NCBI RefSeq assembly: GCF_000143415.4
Contig: NW_003314305.1
Span: 1,460,834 to 1,524,833 of the forward strand
Direction: 5' to 3'
From: Selaginella moellendorffii
Lineage: Eukaryota; Plantae; Lycopodiophyta
DNA: 64,000 nt
Of this stretch, positions 16,590 through 23,261 are shown one piece after another (the stretch's first letter is position 1; the number at the start of each line of letters is the position of its first letter). The notes below the pieces were generated by a model. The model was not told the origin of the DNA. It ran no database searches and saw nothing but the letters and a program-made list of their open reading frames with translations. Made by a program: the position numbers and the translations under genes.

Positions 16590-19500
16590 TTAAAAATCAC
16601 CATAACGAGAGATGGCAACGTTGCCTTGCACTGGAATGTGATGAGATCCTCCAATCACTGCAGTGCAATCCGGACACCTCGACTGCTCCATTGGACGGCC
16701 ACACTCTCCGACCACATAGATGTGACCATTCGGGCATTTGTACCACGTACCTCCAACGCTCCCAAGCGCGGCTCTCAATTCCACCGCTTCAATCTCCACA
16801 CTTCTCTTCATCTTCTCGGCCTCACTCTTAATCCTCACTGCGTTCTCGTTCCCGGGATCGTGCCCTAGCACCGCCTCACAGATCGCCACCGCAGCCGCAA
16901 ACTTTTGCAGATTTGTGAGCGCCAGAGCCCACTGCACCATCGCCTGGATCGCGAGCTCCACACCGGCGTTTGCGACGAGATCACTGGGTGAAACGTTGCT
17001 TGGAAGAGGAGTGTAGCTGCTCGAGCTCGAGGTGTCTGATCGAATTGTCGAGATCTCGGACGAGAGTGGGCTCGACTGGACGATCAATCTCAGATGGTCG
17101 ATTGCTTTCTCGAAGTCTTTGGCCTGGCAATACGCTGTTCCAATCCCAAGGTGGGCCTGGAAGAGCCCCGACTCGACCTGGATCGCCTCGGTGAAGAGTT
17201 CTATGGCCGCCGAGTGATTCTTCTTCCCGAGGTGCTGGAATCCCTGGTTTGTCTTGTAATTCGCCATCACTCTCCTCTTGACTTGCTCGATCTCTTGGAG
17301 CTTTGCTTTGACGATGTTTGCGTAGCGGTGAGTTCTCCGGATTGGAGTCTTGCATAGCGGGCTGGGGAAAGAACACGATCAACCAAGAAATCTAGCATGG
17401 ATCAGACTCTTCTTACGTACCAGGACTTGAGAAGGATCGCCGATTGATTGTCGTCAGACTCCATCCATCGATCCAAAGTCGACACTTCAAACAAATGGCC
17501 GCAATCTTGGAGCTGGATGAATCGATCAGATCTATCGCTCTCCCCCAAACTTGTGAGCGAGATTGGATCTCGAGTTTCTGGATCGCAAATCCGGCACTTC
17601 GTCGGGCAAGGCTCGCCGCAAAGCCCAATGCATCGGTGGCGACACGTGGAAAGCCGCCTCCTACATGGCATGTCGCACCGTCCGCGCTGGCATGTTTCGT
17701 GGCACTTTAGCTCGCACTTGAGGTGGCGGCATCTCCAGGAGCATCTTTCCCGACACGGCCGACATGGCTCTCCACAACGCTTGGAGCACTGGCTGTGGAC
17801 GCAGCGCTTGTCGCATGGTCGCCGACAAGGTGGGCAGGGGACCGAGCAACTGTCCTGGCAGAGGTGACCGCAAGGAAGATCCCGACCGCATCTTTGCTGA
17901 CACGTAATATGCTTTTCTCCACGTTGGCACCGCCCACACGTCCCCTTGCACCGGTGCTGGCAGCCCTCTAGGATGGCGTCACATGACACACTGCATGAGA
18001 AGGTGGCGGGGTCGTGGAAGCATCTCATCCGTTCCCCATGTCCACATGGCAGCTCCCTGACCACCGATTCGCAGCATTTGGTCTCACATGGCCTTCCACA
18101 GCTGCTCGGGCATGGATGGCCGCAAGGGAGAGGTCTCGGGCAGGGACTCGAGCACGCGACCTCTTCTACCTTGGTCGCGCATGGAATCCTTTGCTCGTGA
18201 CCACAGCTAGGGTTTATCTTCGCGACGAGGATCTGGCAGGGCCGGCAGGGGCGATCGCCATGGCAGAGGTTGGCGCAGCTATGACCGCATTCTTCTCGGA
18301 TTTTCTCGCATTGCTTGGGACAGATCACGGCGTCGTGCGATCCCGGATGGCATCGTCTCGGGCAAGCGTGGCCGCATTCGAGCTGGAATTCGCAAGGTCT
18401 GTTGCATCCGCCATCGCCGACGAGGCGGAAATCTTGGATCTTCCGGACCGGGGTCTCGGTGTCGGGGTGATTCTGGCAGCGCAGCACCAGTGCATCACCG
18501 ATCGAGTGCTGCTCCTGGAGGATTTCGAGGATCTTGCGCCAGAGATCGCTCTTCCGGGTCAGTAATTCCGCGTTGCCGAACATGTAGAGGCCCTGGCGAG
18601 CTCGCGAGAGAGCTACATTGATCCGGTTGGCGATGTTGAGGAAGCCGATCTTTCCAGCGCTTTCTTTGTCCGGGATTATGTTGCTCCTCACCAGCGAGAG
18701 AAGGATTATCGTGTTCTCCTCGCCTTGGAACTCGTCCACACTGGACACTCGCGGCAAACTTCCATCAGCTCCAGGAACATCTATGGAAGATGACGAAGAC
18801 GATGATCCACGATTTCTCCACGAAGGACTATCTGACGACGATGATGATCCACGATTTCTCCACGAAGGACCATCTATGGCGGATGACGAGGAAGGACGAT
18901 CTGAAGTTGCTCCTCGAATGCTCGAAGAAGTAGCGCCAGATCGAAAGAAGCTGTGCTCCGCCAACCTCCGCTGGATCTCCTTGACTTGTCCCTTATACAT
19001 GGCGAGGATGGTCACGTCCTTGGCATCGTAGCAGGCTTGGTTGAGAAGATAGACACAGAGCTCCACCACGAGTCCGGCTTCAATGGGATTGATCTTGGTC
19101 GCGCCATCTTCTTCGTCGCCGCAATCCTGCTGCTCGAGAGCTTTGTGATCCAGGAAGAACAAGCTCGACTTCATGCCTTTGATATCCTCGTACTCGGAAG
19201 CTCTGGCATGGTCCTTCAAGCTGGGATAGATGGTGCCAGAGATGAGCTTGGAGATGCAAGGCTTCATCCTTCGCTGGGTTTGGAGCATTACGTGCTGGAT
19301 TCCATTCTTCACCATCCGCTCGAAGAGAGAGACCTCGAGTTTGTGCTTGGTGGCGAGCTTGTAAGTCGCCACAGAAGGACGGAGCTGCAAGTGATCCCCG
19401 ATGAGAATAAGTTGGCGAGTGTGCTGCGTGAGGCATGCAAGTACGTGACTCTCGAGCACCTCAGCCGCTTCTTCGACGATGACAATCTCTGGCTGGAGAA

Positions 19501-22500
19501 CGGCCAGCATCTCGTTCAATCGAGCAGCCCCGGTCGTCGTCATTCCCACAACTTTGGATTTTCTCAGTATCGAGAGCTGGATTTCTCGCTGGGCTTCCTC
19601 GTTCGCCTTGCAAGCGGCGAGGTAGTTAAGGGTGTGCCGGGCAAGTTGGCGGCGAGCTTCGGTGTGGATCTTCAGGAGCCAGTACTGATGAAGCCTTCGT
19701 CTTTCTCTCACGGGAAGGCTCCACAGGTCGGGGTCGTCAACAAAGACATCCAGTGGGATTTCTTCTTGGATTTGGTTGGAGGAACTGGCTGCGTCGAAAG
19801 AAGCAGCAGGGACAGATTGGTCTTCATCTACCTCCACAACCTTGCGCTTGCCGCGATCCGCCTGCTGATCCGGTGGAGCAGCGATCGTCTCGACAATCGG
19901 AGCTTCAGGGTTGGTATCGTCCCTTACTTCGCATTTTTTCTGGAAAGTCTCAGCTAGCCAGCCTCGGATCCTCGCACTAAGCGCACTGCCTGCTTCGTCA
20001 CTTTCTGCTTTTGGTTCCTCTTCTTCTTCCATCTCCGATCCAGTATCTGTTTCTGCCTCCTCCTCACTTGAGCTCTCATAAACATTCCCATGGTCAGCTG
20101 GCTCTTGATCCTCGTCCTCGAGGAGATCAAAACGATTGTAGTTCTTCTTGTCCTTCAGTGTCACGGACTTCTTCTCAAGTGCCACAGTCTTTCTCTGGAT
20201 GCTTTCCCCCTCCAGCCAAGCCTTCACCCCTCCAGGTCCATTTTCAAACAAAGCTTTTGACTGTTCATACGTCGCGATCTCAAGAAGCCGCTCTCTCGTC
20301 ACGTACTGAAGCTCCATTTGCCTCTTGCAGTTTTCGATGGCCTCTTCGAAAGTTTCCATTCCACTGGCGGAAGCCATGGACATTCGTACCAGAGGTGGGC
20401 TCAACTTACAGTCCTTTCGAATATTTGCGAGAAGGCAACGATCCACGGTCTTGCTTTTTGATCCCGCGCCAACACGAACAACTCTGGTCTCGAACTCCAT
20501 CACTTTCTCCAGGAACTGATCCAGTGCATGGTTTGTGTAGCAGACAATGAGGATTGGACCGTGAAGGACACCAGGTTGTTCCTGTTCTTGACCTTTCCAA
20601 GGTGACGTGATATCTGGCCTTGCACAGCTTTCGCTGAAAAGATTTGCTAGCAGTGCTCGCACGATCAGGAGGCCAACGAAAGTTTTGCCAGTGCCGGGAG
20701 GTCCTTGAATGAGTGCGAGTCTCTTCGTCAAGGCATGTTTGATCGCTGCTTTCTGGCTCGCATCCAAGGTACAAGACGGCCAATCCGGCCACTCCTGAAG
20801 TATGTGAAATCTGGATCGACCGAGTTCTTCTTTCATTTCAGGAAACGTAGCCTCGAAGTCGTAGAAGTCTCCTCCAGCTCGGTGCACCAAGTATGACGGT
20901 GGCTTTACCTCTTGATCCAGCGCGACAAGGTTGTCATTGAACGGTAAGCACTCCATTTCTTCTTTCTGCAGCACCTTCAAAACGTGGCAATAAGCTCCAA
21001 AGTATGCTCCTGTAGATTCGATCATCGTATACGCTGTTTCCTGGAGCTCAGCACCATCGAGTAAGATCACGTCGACAAGTCCTTGAGCCAGCTTGTCTCT
21101 CGATGCTACCGTTCCAAAGACTACCGACCTCTGGAAGTTGTCGGGACTGAAGCATACCAGCGCTTCGAACATGAGACGCTTCGAGTTTTTCCAGTCCTCG
21201 TCAACCATTCTTCGTCGCCGCGTTCCTCGAATATCGAATCTCACTCTCGTTGCAATGCCTTCTCGGACGAGAACCACCTGTATCGGTCGGACGTTCTCAT
21301 AGACTCGGACGTCCAGGCGGCCTTTCGCTCCGTTTTGGTGCTGCTTTATACCGTTCCTCAGCGGCTCGATGAAGTCTTCTCTCGTGAGCCTGAAGTGAGT
21401 TTCTAGATACTCCGTCGCGGAAGAATAACGAGTGTCTGTCTTGTTCACAGGCACTTCTGATGGAGCGACAATGTTGAGCAGCTCTGGGTTGGTGGGGATG
21501 ATAGGCGAGCTGCGGAACTCCGATCCCTGCAAGGCACAAGGAGAAAGATCAGTACTTCTCTTCGAGACAACAAGGTCTTAAAAGACTTGCCTGTAAGCAC
21601 GCATCCGGGTTTGCTGCCGTGAGTTTGAGCCGGAGCCTTTGCTTGTGTTCTAACAGGGCCGTCGTCTTGTTTGCGAGCTCCACTTTCAACGGACATTCGG
21701 GAACAAGATCCAGAGAATCCTTGATCTCGTGCAGAGGTACGTGCTTCCAGCCATCGAGAGTTCGTTGCTGAATCTCTTCTGCCAAAAGCAGGAACGGCTC
21801 CAGCTTCTGTGCGGTCGGGGGTGTGAGATTGTTGATGTGAACCTGGAGATCTTTGAGGAAGCTCGATCCAAGCAGCGAACCGAAGATCAAGTTGGTGTTG
21901 TGCTTGAGCATGCTGCACCGGAATCCTTCCTTGGTCAGCAACTTCACCAGCATGTTTGCCGACTTGAGGCCGAGATGCGGACTCGAGAGAACGTTTTGAA
22001 GCGCTTGGAGTCCTTTCGCCGAGCTGAGATACTCGATGTTGTCGGCCGAGTGCTGTTCAAGCTGCGTGATCAGCCACCTTTCGATGTGAGGCCCCGAAGC
22101 AAAGGTGGTGCTTGTGGCGTTCGAGGAGCTCGAGCCGTGCGAGAACCTACACAGGTGTCCATTTCTACAATGCCCTTGCTGAAAGTAGTGACATTGTTTC
22201 CTTTCTTCTCTTCCAGAGCTCCTGGACGGTGGTTGATACTTTCCCACTGCTGCTGGCTGCTGCTCTACGGTCACTCTTCCAGAGCTCCTGGCCGGTGGTT
22301 GATACTTCCCCGCTGCTGGTTTCGGAATGGCTGGCTGCTGCTGCTGCTCTACGATCACGAACTTTGGCATGCGGCGCTTGGAAGCGCAGTCCTCGAGCAC
22401 GAGAGCCAACTCCAGATCCGATGGAACGGCGACGAGCTCCTTGGTGTCGTCCTCGAACATGACGGCGGCCGGGGTTTGCAGCCTGTCAAACGTTTCTCTC

Positions 22501-22759
22501 GCGACTGTGAGAAGCTCCGCGAGGCTTTGGTGCTCGGCGAAGCGGACGAGTCGAGTGGTTTCATGGTACCGCAGCTTCACCAGGCGATTGGACGCGACCT
22601 CCTGCTGGGATGGAAAGTGGTCATCGAGGCAGCAAAGCTGGCAGCAAACTTTACCTCTGGAGCGCTGGTTGACGACGATGATCCATCTCCAGCTACCAGA
22701 GCACTAAGATTCAACGGAAGAACAACACAGCCATGGCGCTTCCTCGTCTCTCTCGCCAT
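16590..22759 (-). CDS. ZNFX1: ZNFX1-like protein, about 1997 aa: PB1 - CCCH - helical region - UPF1-like SF1 helicase - NF-X1 zinc fingers - RING-like - TPR - RZ finger. Exons 22759-22655, 22601-21591, 21526-17421, 17361-16590
   Basis: All SF1 motifs are intact (QGPPGTGKT, CYTNHALDQFLE, IVEEAAE, LIGDHLQLRP, VDEFQGEEN, NRINVALSRAR). Repeated CGHxC fingers, QDCGHLFE..KSCPLCK and WYKCPNGH..GECG..CPDC..IGG. Splicing (one GC-AG intron) restores one frame. Confidence 0.92.
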
Positions 22760-23261
22760 CGCAGCGATGGGGAGTGAGAGAGCTTGGTTGATCTCAATAC
22801 GTTGGTCTCGATCGTGGTTCTTTGTTTCGCGCTGAGGTGGCTAGCAGTCTTGCATCAATGGGAGAGACTAGACGTGCATTCTTATGATTTAGCTATAGAT
22901 GCCAACCTTGTAAGCGGGAGATTCGACTGTGAAAGTGAAAGCTACCGTGGTTTCACGAAATGTAGCCTCAGGGATGACGTGTCACAGCTAGGTCCTACGT
23001 GGCAATCAGTGCTCAAGTAAGTATAAACCAATACTATGATTAGATTTTATGAGAAAACCATACCTTTAAATTAGTATTGTTTGAGTCGGTAATGAACTAT
23101 AGATGAAAATGACAATTTATTAGTTAACAAAACCGCGCGTCCAACGAGGCGTTGAACCATTGATAGATTTTCTTGGATGACAAAAAGAGTGATTTTCGCG
23201 ACGCTCGTCGCTATCCAATCTATCCGTCTGTCTAGACATCTATATACTATACATGCTTTCC

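Follow-up and report, generated by a model that had tools for sequence, protein, structure and literature searches.

A 64,000-nucleotide (nt) stretch of the genome of the lycophyte Selaginella moellendorffii (contig NW_003314305.1, positions 1,460,834 to 1,524,833; the window) carries on its minus strand, at 22759..16590, a gene for a large protein of the ZNFX1 family of RNA helicases and E3 ubiquitin ligases. The locus is a real gene, and its product is read here, with a probability of roughly 0.6, as a streptophyte ZNFX1 orthologue, the copy carried by Selaginella moellendorffii, intact and one of two lycophyte paralogues, in which core chemistry like that of animal ZNFX1 is combined with PB1, CCCH, and TPR additions. 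The ZNFX1 family is known; what is new is the plant form with PB1 and CCCH, of which no description was found in the literature. Streptophyte ZNFX1 proteins are already present in public databases under automatic names, including SELMODRAFT_438270, SELMODRAFT_408664, Adiantum L7F22_015804, Mesotaenium ME000680S09086, Marchantia Mp5g14410, and Ginkgo Gb_08232. A literature search for ZNFX1 or ZNFX-1 combined with PB1, plants, land plants, Arabidopsis, or Hrr1 found no paper on plant ZNFX1; none joined ZNFX1 with "land plants", and those pairing it with PB1, "plants", or Arabidopsis concern, by their titles or passages, animal ZNFX1 or unrelated subjects.

Domain architecture of the protein

Joining the four minus-strand exons listed in Table 1 gives a spliced coding sequence of 5997 nt and a protein of 1998 amino acids (aa) with no internal stops, in line with the spliceable open reading frame (ORF) of about 1997 aa that had been proposed from the letters of the DNA before any database was consulted (the sequence-only reading). 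The motifs quoted in that reading (LVKLRY, FEDDTKELV, and CPNGHIYVVGECGRPMEQSRCPDC..IGG) are all present, and its assignment of the product to a ZNFX1-type helicase/E3 ligase with PB1, CCCH, and TPR additions is borne out by Pfam profiles, alignments, and fold matches. The UPF1-like helicase of superfamily 1 (SF1), which had been called intact, is so: in addition to AAA_11 and AAA_12 matches, it retains the motifs GPPGTGKT (at residue 648), VEEAAE (1057), QRRM (1124), and VDEFQG (1303), and the exon 3 product matches the ZNFX1 chain solved by cryo-electron microscopy (PDB 9q9z, E 9.6e-168) and UPF1 structures (E 3e-32). A look-up in the ESM Atlas gave only generic AAA_11/AAA_12 clusters, without taxa.

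The NF-X1 finger array and RING-like region of the sequence-only reading correspond to the stalk and Miz domain of vertebrate ZNFX1, with 46% identity over 304 aa to residues 1321-1617 of the felid protein (E 8e-71), in which the eight published residues compared carry the same numbers as in human ZNFX1; the Pfam zf-NF-X1 profile found no match on the protein at E up to 1. The Miz domain aligns with the vertebrate segment EDCSHIFEV...CPICQVPI, conserves C-x-H ... C-x2-C, and is a predicted E3 domain; human Phe1575, which lies in Miz and is mutated in the catalytic-dead protein, aligns with Leu. The TPRs that had been noticed score above the Pfam cut-offs (TPR_1 38.4 versus 27.8, TPR_19 38 versus 25, TPR_2 35.2 versus 27) and match consensus TPR structures (E 2e-30); every streptophyte orthologue aligns over this module, but the segment linking Miz to RZ in vertebrates does not align with it. 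In the RZ finger, likewise anticipated at the C-terminus, C1951, H1955, C1971, and C1974 are the predicted zinc ligands and C1962 and H1983 the predicted catalytic pair, with spacing exactly that of human C1849/H1853/C1860/C1869/C1872/H1881. The finger also matches the RZ of RNF213 (E 3.5e-11), with the catalytic Cys conserved, whereas the remainder of RNF213, with its dynein-like AAA core in place of an SF1 helicase, is unrelated.

Ahead of these regions lie the N-terminal additions. The PB1 match covers profile positions 4-82 of 84 (79/84). An AlphaFold2 (AF2) model of the N-terminal 90 residues has a predicted local distance difference test score (pLDDT) of 88 and adopts the b-b-a-b-b-a-b topology of a ubiquitin-like beta-grasp, and all 12 of its best Foldseek matches in PDB are PB1 domains, headed by NBR1 (2bkf, E 1.4e-5, TM-score 0.75) and including p40/p67phox, AtNBR1, PKCiota-Par6, and Cdc24; the N-terminus thus folds, in the model, as the PB1 domain it had been taken for. 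The likeness to PB1 scaffolds (NBR1, p62/SQSTM1, p40/p67phox, PKCiota-Par6, and plant ARF-Aux/IAA) lies in the beta-grasp fold and the beta-1 lysine; sequence identity to them is only 14-24%. A single-sequence phmmer search with PB1 alone against 1.84 billion representatives returned one match, a spurious low-complexity repeat protein, because the domain is too divergent for a search of this kind. The sequence-only reading had described a conserved Lys and an acidic OPCA-like motif. Fold, profile, and the type B lysine stand, the latter being Lys45 in beta-1 (LVKLRY; Lys in five of six aligned sequences, Arg in Marchantia). The OPCA core stands only in part: judged against the type A pattern Y-x-D-x-D-G-D ... 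D-x-D/E-L, the segment F85-E100 reads F-E-D-D-T-K-E ... S-D-L-E-L, with T-K-E in place of the G-D core, whereas the aligned relatives retain the canonical Y-x-D-x-D/E-G-D/E.

The CCCH finger fared similarly, in that the predicted C-x7-C-x5-C-x3-H pattern is exact but its Pfam scores (17.8-21 bits) fall below the cut-offs, the best being 21.0 versus 24.6. It sits at the equivalent place in relatives, in five of which it scores above the cut-off (Mesotaenium, Calypogeia, the Selaginella paralogue, Adiantum, and a fern transcript). The linker between PB1 and CCCH, at about 22210-22330 (aa 132-168), contains an internal tandem repeat, PAA(V)GKYQPP(A/S)RSSGR. The armadillo (ARM) domain that follows was recognized by structure, as BLASTP of this region against the N-terminus of felid ZNFX1 found no similarity: the only clear PDB match of its model is the crystal structure of the human ZNFX1 ARM (9eve, E 2.9e-3, TM-score 0.70, root-mean-square deviation 3.1 over 170 columns), and no other match exceeds a TM-score of 0.5. 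PB1, CCCH, and ARM occupy one uninterrupted exon, so PB1 is physically fused to a ZNFX1-specific domain.

Compared with vertebrate ZNFX1 (9q9z and 9eve), the Selaginella protein has the same order of ARM, SF1 helicase with ZNFX1 domain and acidic insertion, stalk, Miz/Z-RING, and RZ, with the catalytic Cys and His of RZ also shared; it differs by the addition of PB1 and CCCH ahead of ARM, by a helical linker between Miz and RZ that is a recognizable TPR, and by a short tail after RZ.

Table 1. Domains, gene structure, and antisense transcript of the locus, in window coordinates.
Feature	Coordinates	Strand	Evidence or remark
PB1 domain	22350..22580	-	Pfam PF00564, 31.7 bits versus cut-off 23.6
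CCCH zinc finger, C173-x7-C181-x5-C187-x3-H191	22134..22202	-	Exact pattern
ZNFX1-type ARM domain, aa 204-373	21591..22100	-	AF2 pLDDT 93.7 and fold match
ZNFX1 domain	21011..21316	-	Pfam PF25396, 75.3 bits versus cut-off 27
SF1/UPF1-like helicase core, AAA_11 and AAA_12, with acidic insertion	18569..20767	-	Pfam 101 and 130 bits
NF-X1-type zinc-finger stalk	17576..18406	-	Alignment to felid ZNFX1
Miz/Z-RING-like predicted E3 domain (DCGHLFEV ... C-P-L-C), split by intron 3	17300..17548	-	Alignment
TPR module between Miz and RZ	16812..17252	-	Pfam
RZ finger	16617..16754	-	Pfam 85 bits
Exon 1 (aa 1-35), poorly conserved N-terminal leader	22655..22759	-	In-frame ATG at 22759
Intron 1, 50 nt, GT-AG, phase 0	22605..22654	-	Links ATG exon to PB1 frame
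Exon 2 (aa 36-373): PB1, linker, CCCH, ARM	21591..22604	-	Single 338-codon open frame
Intron 2, 64 nt, GC-AG, phase 0	21527..21590	-	Classical donor CAG/GCAAGT
Exon 3 (aa 374-1742): helicase, NF-X1 stalk, first Miz half	17421..21526	-	1376-aa open frame
Intron 3, 59 nt, GT-AG, phase 2	17362..17420	-	Donor G/GTACGT, acceptor ccccag/C
Exon 4 (aa 1742-1998 and stop)	16590..17361	-	Open frame, splice signals
Spliced antisense transcript over 5' two-thirds of gene	18090..22790	+	Contigs of four runs
Antisense introns 1-5	19910-20330, 20487-20543, 20602-20653, 20769-20841, 20944-21015	+	Contig joints
Antisense introns 6-9	21395-21450, 21593-21656, 21737-21791, 22155-22216	+	Contig joints

Distribution and descent among plants

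The deep evolution of ZNFX1 has been traced on the animal side only, to choanoflagellates (bioRxiv 10.1101/2025.10.14.682297). Database searches, in which the best 120 matches within a length band were considered, were made with the exon 3 product of the window and with the Ginkgo protein as queries. The best non-self matches of exon 3 were the fern Adiantum, followed by the liverworts Calypogeia, Riccia, and Marchantia, the Selaginella paralogue, another fern (Ceratopteris), the alga Mesotaenium, and Cryptomeria and Ginkgo, while animal ZNFX1 proteins, in their hundreds, ranked after the streptophyte matches. With the Ginkgo query, the seed-plant sequences among the best 120 were gymnosperms only (Ginkgo, two Cryptomeria, Taxus, and two unnamed transcripts), and the remaining listed matches, down to 970 bits, were all animal. 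Angiosperm proteins are missing from the best 120 matches of both queries, among which gymnosperm, fern, liverwort, and algal proteins are represented; this pattern supports, but does not prove, a loss of ZNFX1 in flowering plants, which the sequence-only reading had stated to lack it.

That canonical ZNFX1 has no PB1, also stated there, agrees with the precomputed Pfam lists of about 200 animal ZNFX1 entries, none of which contains PB1. The idea that the fusion is a lycophyte novelty did not survive, given that ZNFX1 with PB1 and CCCH occurs from a streptophyte alga to ferns. PB1 clears its Pfam threshold in Mesotaenium, Marchantia, Riccia, the Selaginella paralogue, Adiantum, and a fern-like sequence, and both PB1 and CCCH are found on the orthologues of the zygnematophyte Mesotaenium, the liverwort Riccia, the Selaginella paralogue, and ferns; the Marchantia orthologue, a truncated gene model, shows PB1 only. 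The PB1-CCCH-helicase-TPR-RZ plan of the window protein is thus common to non-seed-plant orthologues, and the presence of PB1 and CCCH is, on comparison of these sequences, ancestral to the streptophyte ZNFX1 clade. Among seed plants, a direct Pfam scan of the Ginkgo orthologue (Gb_08232) found neither PB1 nor CCCH, and the precomputed Pfam lists of conifer orthologues hold no PB1, so that the loss of both domains appears to have preceded that of the whole gene.

A fern-like 6.4-kb Logan contig (SRR32617121) holds a single unbroken ORF that encodes PB1, CCCH, helicase, TPR, and RZ. In this contig (125-6100) the gene caller began inside PB1; an upstream ATG at 125 opens the same frame, which, when read from there, includes a complete PB1 (36.9 bits). 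Closely related ZNFX1 pairs with neighbouring gene identifiers exist in Marchantia (Mp5g14410/Mp5g14460) and Mesotaenium (ME000680S09086/S09085), one member of each pair having PB1 and the other lacking it; they are possibly tandem duplicates whose N-termini differ, or the models may be truncated. A search limited to the N-terminus of the Selaginella paralogue retrieved only that paralogue and one Mesotaenium protein and, owing to a word-index limit, is uninformative on absence.

In a maximum-likelihood tree, the streptophyte proteins form one clade with 100% support opposite the animal clade, and branch in the order alga, liverworts, the Selaginella pair, then ferns with gymnosperms; the window protein pairs with its paralogue SELMODRAFT_408664. 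Because this topology follows the species tree, it argues for vertical descent with a lycophyte duplication, the question of vertical versus horizontal origin having been raised by the sequence-only reading. Horizontal transfer from animals was rejected on the same grounds.

Predicted mechanism and possible roles

Human ZNFX1 is an RNA-activated helicase in which Miz/Z-RING and RZ constitute a two-route E3 ligase; it dimerises via ARM, polymerises, and entraps RNA, including viral RNA, by means of K63-linked ubiquitin chains (bioRxiv 10.1101/2025.10.14.682297; 10.1101/2025.09.05.674436). Every element for this chemistry is conserved in the Selaginella sequence, and the same core mechanism is thus the most likely by analogy. 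In such a mechanism, the SF1 helicase would bind single-stranded RNA in a nucleotide-dependent manner, and a rigid stalk of NF-X1 fingers would couple it to the two-part E3 module, wherein the Miz/RING-like domain would engage an E2 and Cys1962 of RZ would accept ubiquitin in a transthiolation for which His1983 serves as the general base; through the resulting ubiquitin chains, the bound RNA would be clustered and entrapped. The CCCH finger is a probable second RNA contact and the TPR linker a probable docking site for a peptide or partner, while PB1 would most likely serve as a second oligomerisation or docking interface beside ARM, the human dimerisation interface. The weakened OPCA argues for an asymmetric PB1 role, in which the basic face only is used. 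We infer from this an RNA-stimulated E3 activity, a partner for PB1, and a role in antiviral defence or the surveillance of aberrant RNA.

The same protein and chemistry could instead serve a memory of endogenous small-RNA silencing, with PB1 as a condensate scaffold and no antiviral role, an alternative that deserves serious attention even though it is unlikely. S. pombe Hrr1 belongs to the helicase family of ZNFX-1 and has a role in RNA silencing. To our knowledge, neither PB1 nor TPR occurs in C. elegans ZNFX-1 or Hrr1, no search of either having been made. According to one paper, which names S. pombe Hrr1 too, C. elegans ZNFX-1, a helicase of this family that functions in RNA silencing and in condensates, acts within condensates in the inheritance of RNA interference (PMC9276528). 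The C. elegans protein marks silenced transcripts in perinuclear condensates. Locally, this alternative gains from an abundant, spliced antisense RNA over the Selaginella gene, which could pair with the mRNA of an RNA-surveillance gene as double-stranded RNA, and from an antisense model that likewise overlies the 5' end of the paralogue. What speaks for the immune-type reading is that C. elegans ZNFX-1 has no RZ domain (bioRxiv 10.1101/2025.10.14.682297), whereas the Selaginella protein keeps the full RZ catalytic set, like the vertebrate immune protein.

The antisense RNA was recovered in contigs assembled from four RNA-like runs, each of a different study. It covers 18090-22790 well and ends close to the sense start codon; all nine of its introns are GT..AG on the plus strand, eight of them measuring 52-73 nt and one 421 nt, and six of the nine joints are common to all four runs. 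A JGI annotation places a 593-aa antisense model at this position, and at the paralogue locus (L003, 2811-4044) an antisense gene model is annotated over the 5' end too. The antisense strand was also considered as a protein-coding gene and rejected: no ORF was found across its exons, and the pattern of synonymous and non-synonymous differences is no better in the plus-strand frames.

A broader proposal joins these strands, namely that PB1 was placed on an ancient RNA-entrapment system kept by streptophytes, such that RNA-activated ubiquitin ligases polymerise head-to-tail or dock on NBR1 or similar PB1 autophagy receptors and route foreign or aberrant RNA into condensates or selective autophagy, with PB1 and CCCH later lost in seed plants, the gene lost in angiosperms, and antisense control acting in Selaginella; as a whole, this scenario is speculative and improbable.

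Integrity of the locus and implications

SELMODRAFT_438270, the best database match and the allele of the other haplotype, is 97.5% identical to the window across the DNA of the locus, as would be expected of a second haplotype, and the proteins are only 86% identical because the public gene model is faulty, both in frame and through skipped residues. At intron 2 this model takes an upstream GT donor and loses a segment of 31 residues (VELANKTTALLEHKQRLRLKL...) whose conservation extends from liverworts to Ginkgo; the GC-AG choice made here retains that segment, and the JGI splice choice was rejected for removing it. In the finger region, the SELMODRAFT_438270 model absorbs a 1-nt insertion via about 150 out-of-frame residues and was likewise rejected, as a frame-shifted read-through forced by the insertion. 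At the 5' end, the support for exon 1 and intron 1 consists of sequence signals, with a strong donor (AG/GTAAAG at 22654) where the JGI allele model places a different small intron; at intron 3, the junction TG/C restores the codon of Cys1742.

Between the alleles, intron 2 differs by an indel of 5 nt, and the indels in exons ahead of the frameshift at 17724 measure 39, 3, and 12 nt; an additional 3-nt indel adjoins the stop, in a stretch that does not align reliably. The in-frame polymorphisms are a 39-nt tandem duplication (13 aa, KFVIVEQQQ...), an extra Gln codon, and a 12-nt insertion (RRAS); they lie at 22337-22361, 22255-22265, and 20591, in low-complexity linkers and, for RRAS, in the helicase insertion. 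The allele comparison counts 34 synonymous and 42 non-synonymous differences; with 23% of sites synonymous, the ratio of non-synonymous to synonymous polymorphism per site (pN/pS) is about 0.37, which indicates purifying selection on a gene that is constrained, though not tightly.

Several observations weigh against an intact, working orthologue. The other haplotype (GCA_000143415.2, GL377567.1) has an extra C at window position 17724 (L001 about 13086), a 1-nt insertion in a C-run of the NF-X1 stalk; Miz, TPR, and RZ would all lie behind the resulting frameshift, and the insertion may represent either a genuine null allele or a fault of the assembly. The partly degenerate OPCA makes head-to-tail homopolymerisation less likely, on sequence grounds, for this copy than for its relatives; the tail after the RZ finger is shorter than in all orthologues, and the branch of this copy is longer than that of its paralogue (0.81 versus 0.57). 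None of the three sense junctions implied by the sequence-only reading was seen in the contigs of the four runs: those over sense introns 1 and 2 are unspliced there and carry antisense splices instead, and positions 17200-17599, which include intron 3, are uncovered. RNA cover beyond the antisense span is thin, with 16800-17199 covered in one run and 17666-18067 in one contig. In the literature searched, no biochemical or genetic data on any plant ZNFX1 were found.

On much of this evidence, one might suppose that this paralogue is drifting to loss, its sense strand weakly or never expressed and its locus mainly a source of antisense non-coding RNA. The missing sense junctions and the low or absent cover of the 3' exons fit such a course, as do the OPCA, the shortened tail, the long branch, the frameshifting insertion, and the ratio of 12 synonymous to 26 non-synonymous among the single-nucleotide polymorphisms within RNA contigs; nevertheless, a dead gene would be most unlikely to keep a stop-free frame of 5997 nt, none of the catalytic or zinc-binding residues has been lost, pN/pS across the alleles points to constraint, the exonic indels named above are in frame while the intronic one is of 5 nt, and the only RNA contig over 17724 agrees with the window and does not have the insertion. 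Decay of this copy is accordingly held to be decidedly improbable. The view that either PB1/CCCH or TPR-RZ comes from a separate gene next door, the 1998-aa protein being an artefact of joining, could draw only on the junctions that went unseen in the four runs and is scarcely credible, because PB1, CCCH, and ARM share one stop-free exon and intron 3 cuts Miz, whose last zinc ligands (Cys-x2-Cys) sit in exon 4 so that this exon must join exon 3; orthologues from alga to fern keep the same order, the fern-like contig being a single ORF, and the sequence-only reading was right to place all exons in one gene.

For the intact streptophyte orthologue, the implications reach beyond Selaginella. A well-supported plant clade would place the ZNFX1 machine before the plant-animal split, and this clade keeps the catalytic residues while adding PB1, a known polymerisation and docking domain, and an RNA finger. 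A 2020 survey catalogued eight PB1 families in plants, none of them a helicase, and the words helicase, NFX1, and zinc finger are absent from it (PMC7051960); the PB1 fusion constitutes a ninth, unreported PB1 protein family beside those eight. Marchantia and Ceratopteris would be tractable models for the study of ZNFX1 outside interferon biology. Lastly, that the searches found no flowering-plant version of this RNA-surveillance component bears on the apparent dominance of RNA silencing and NLR receptors in angiosperm antiviral defence.

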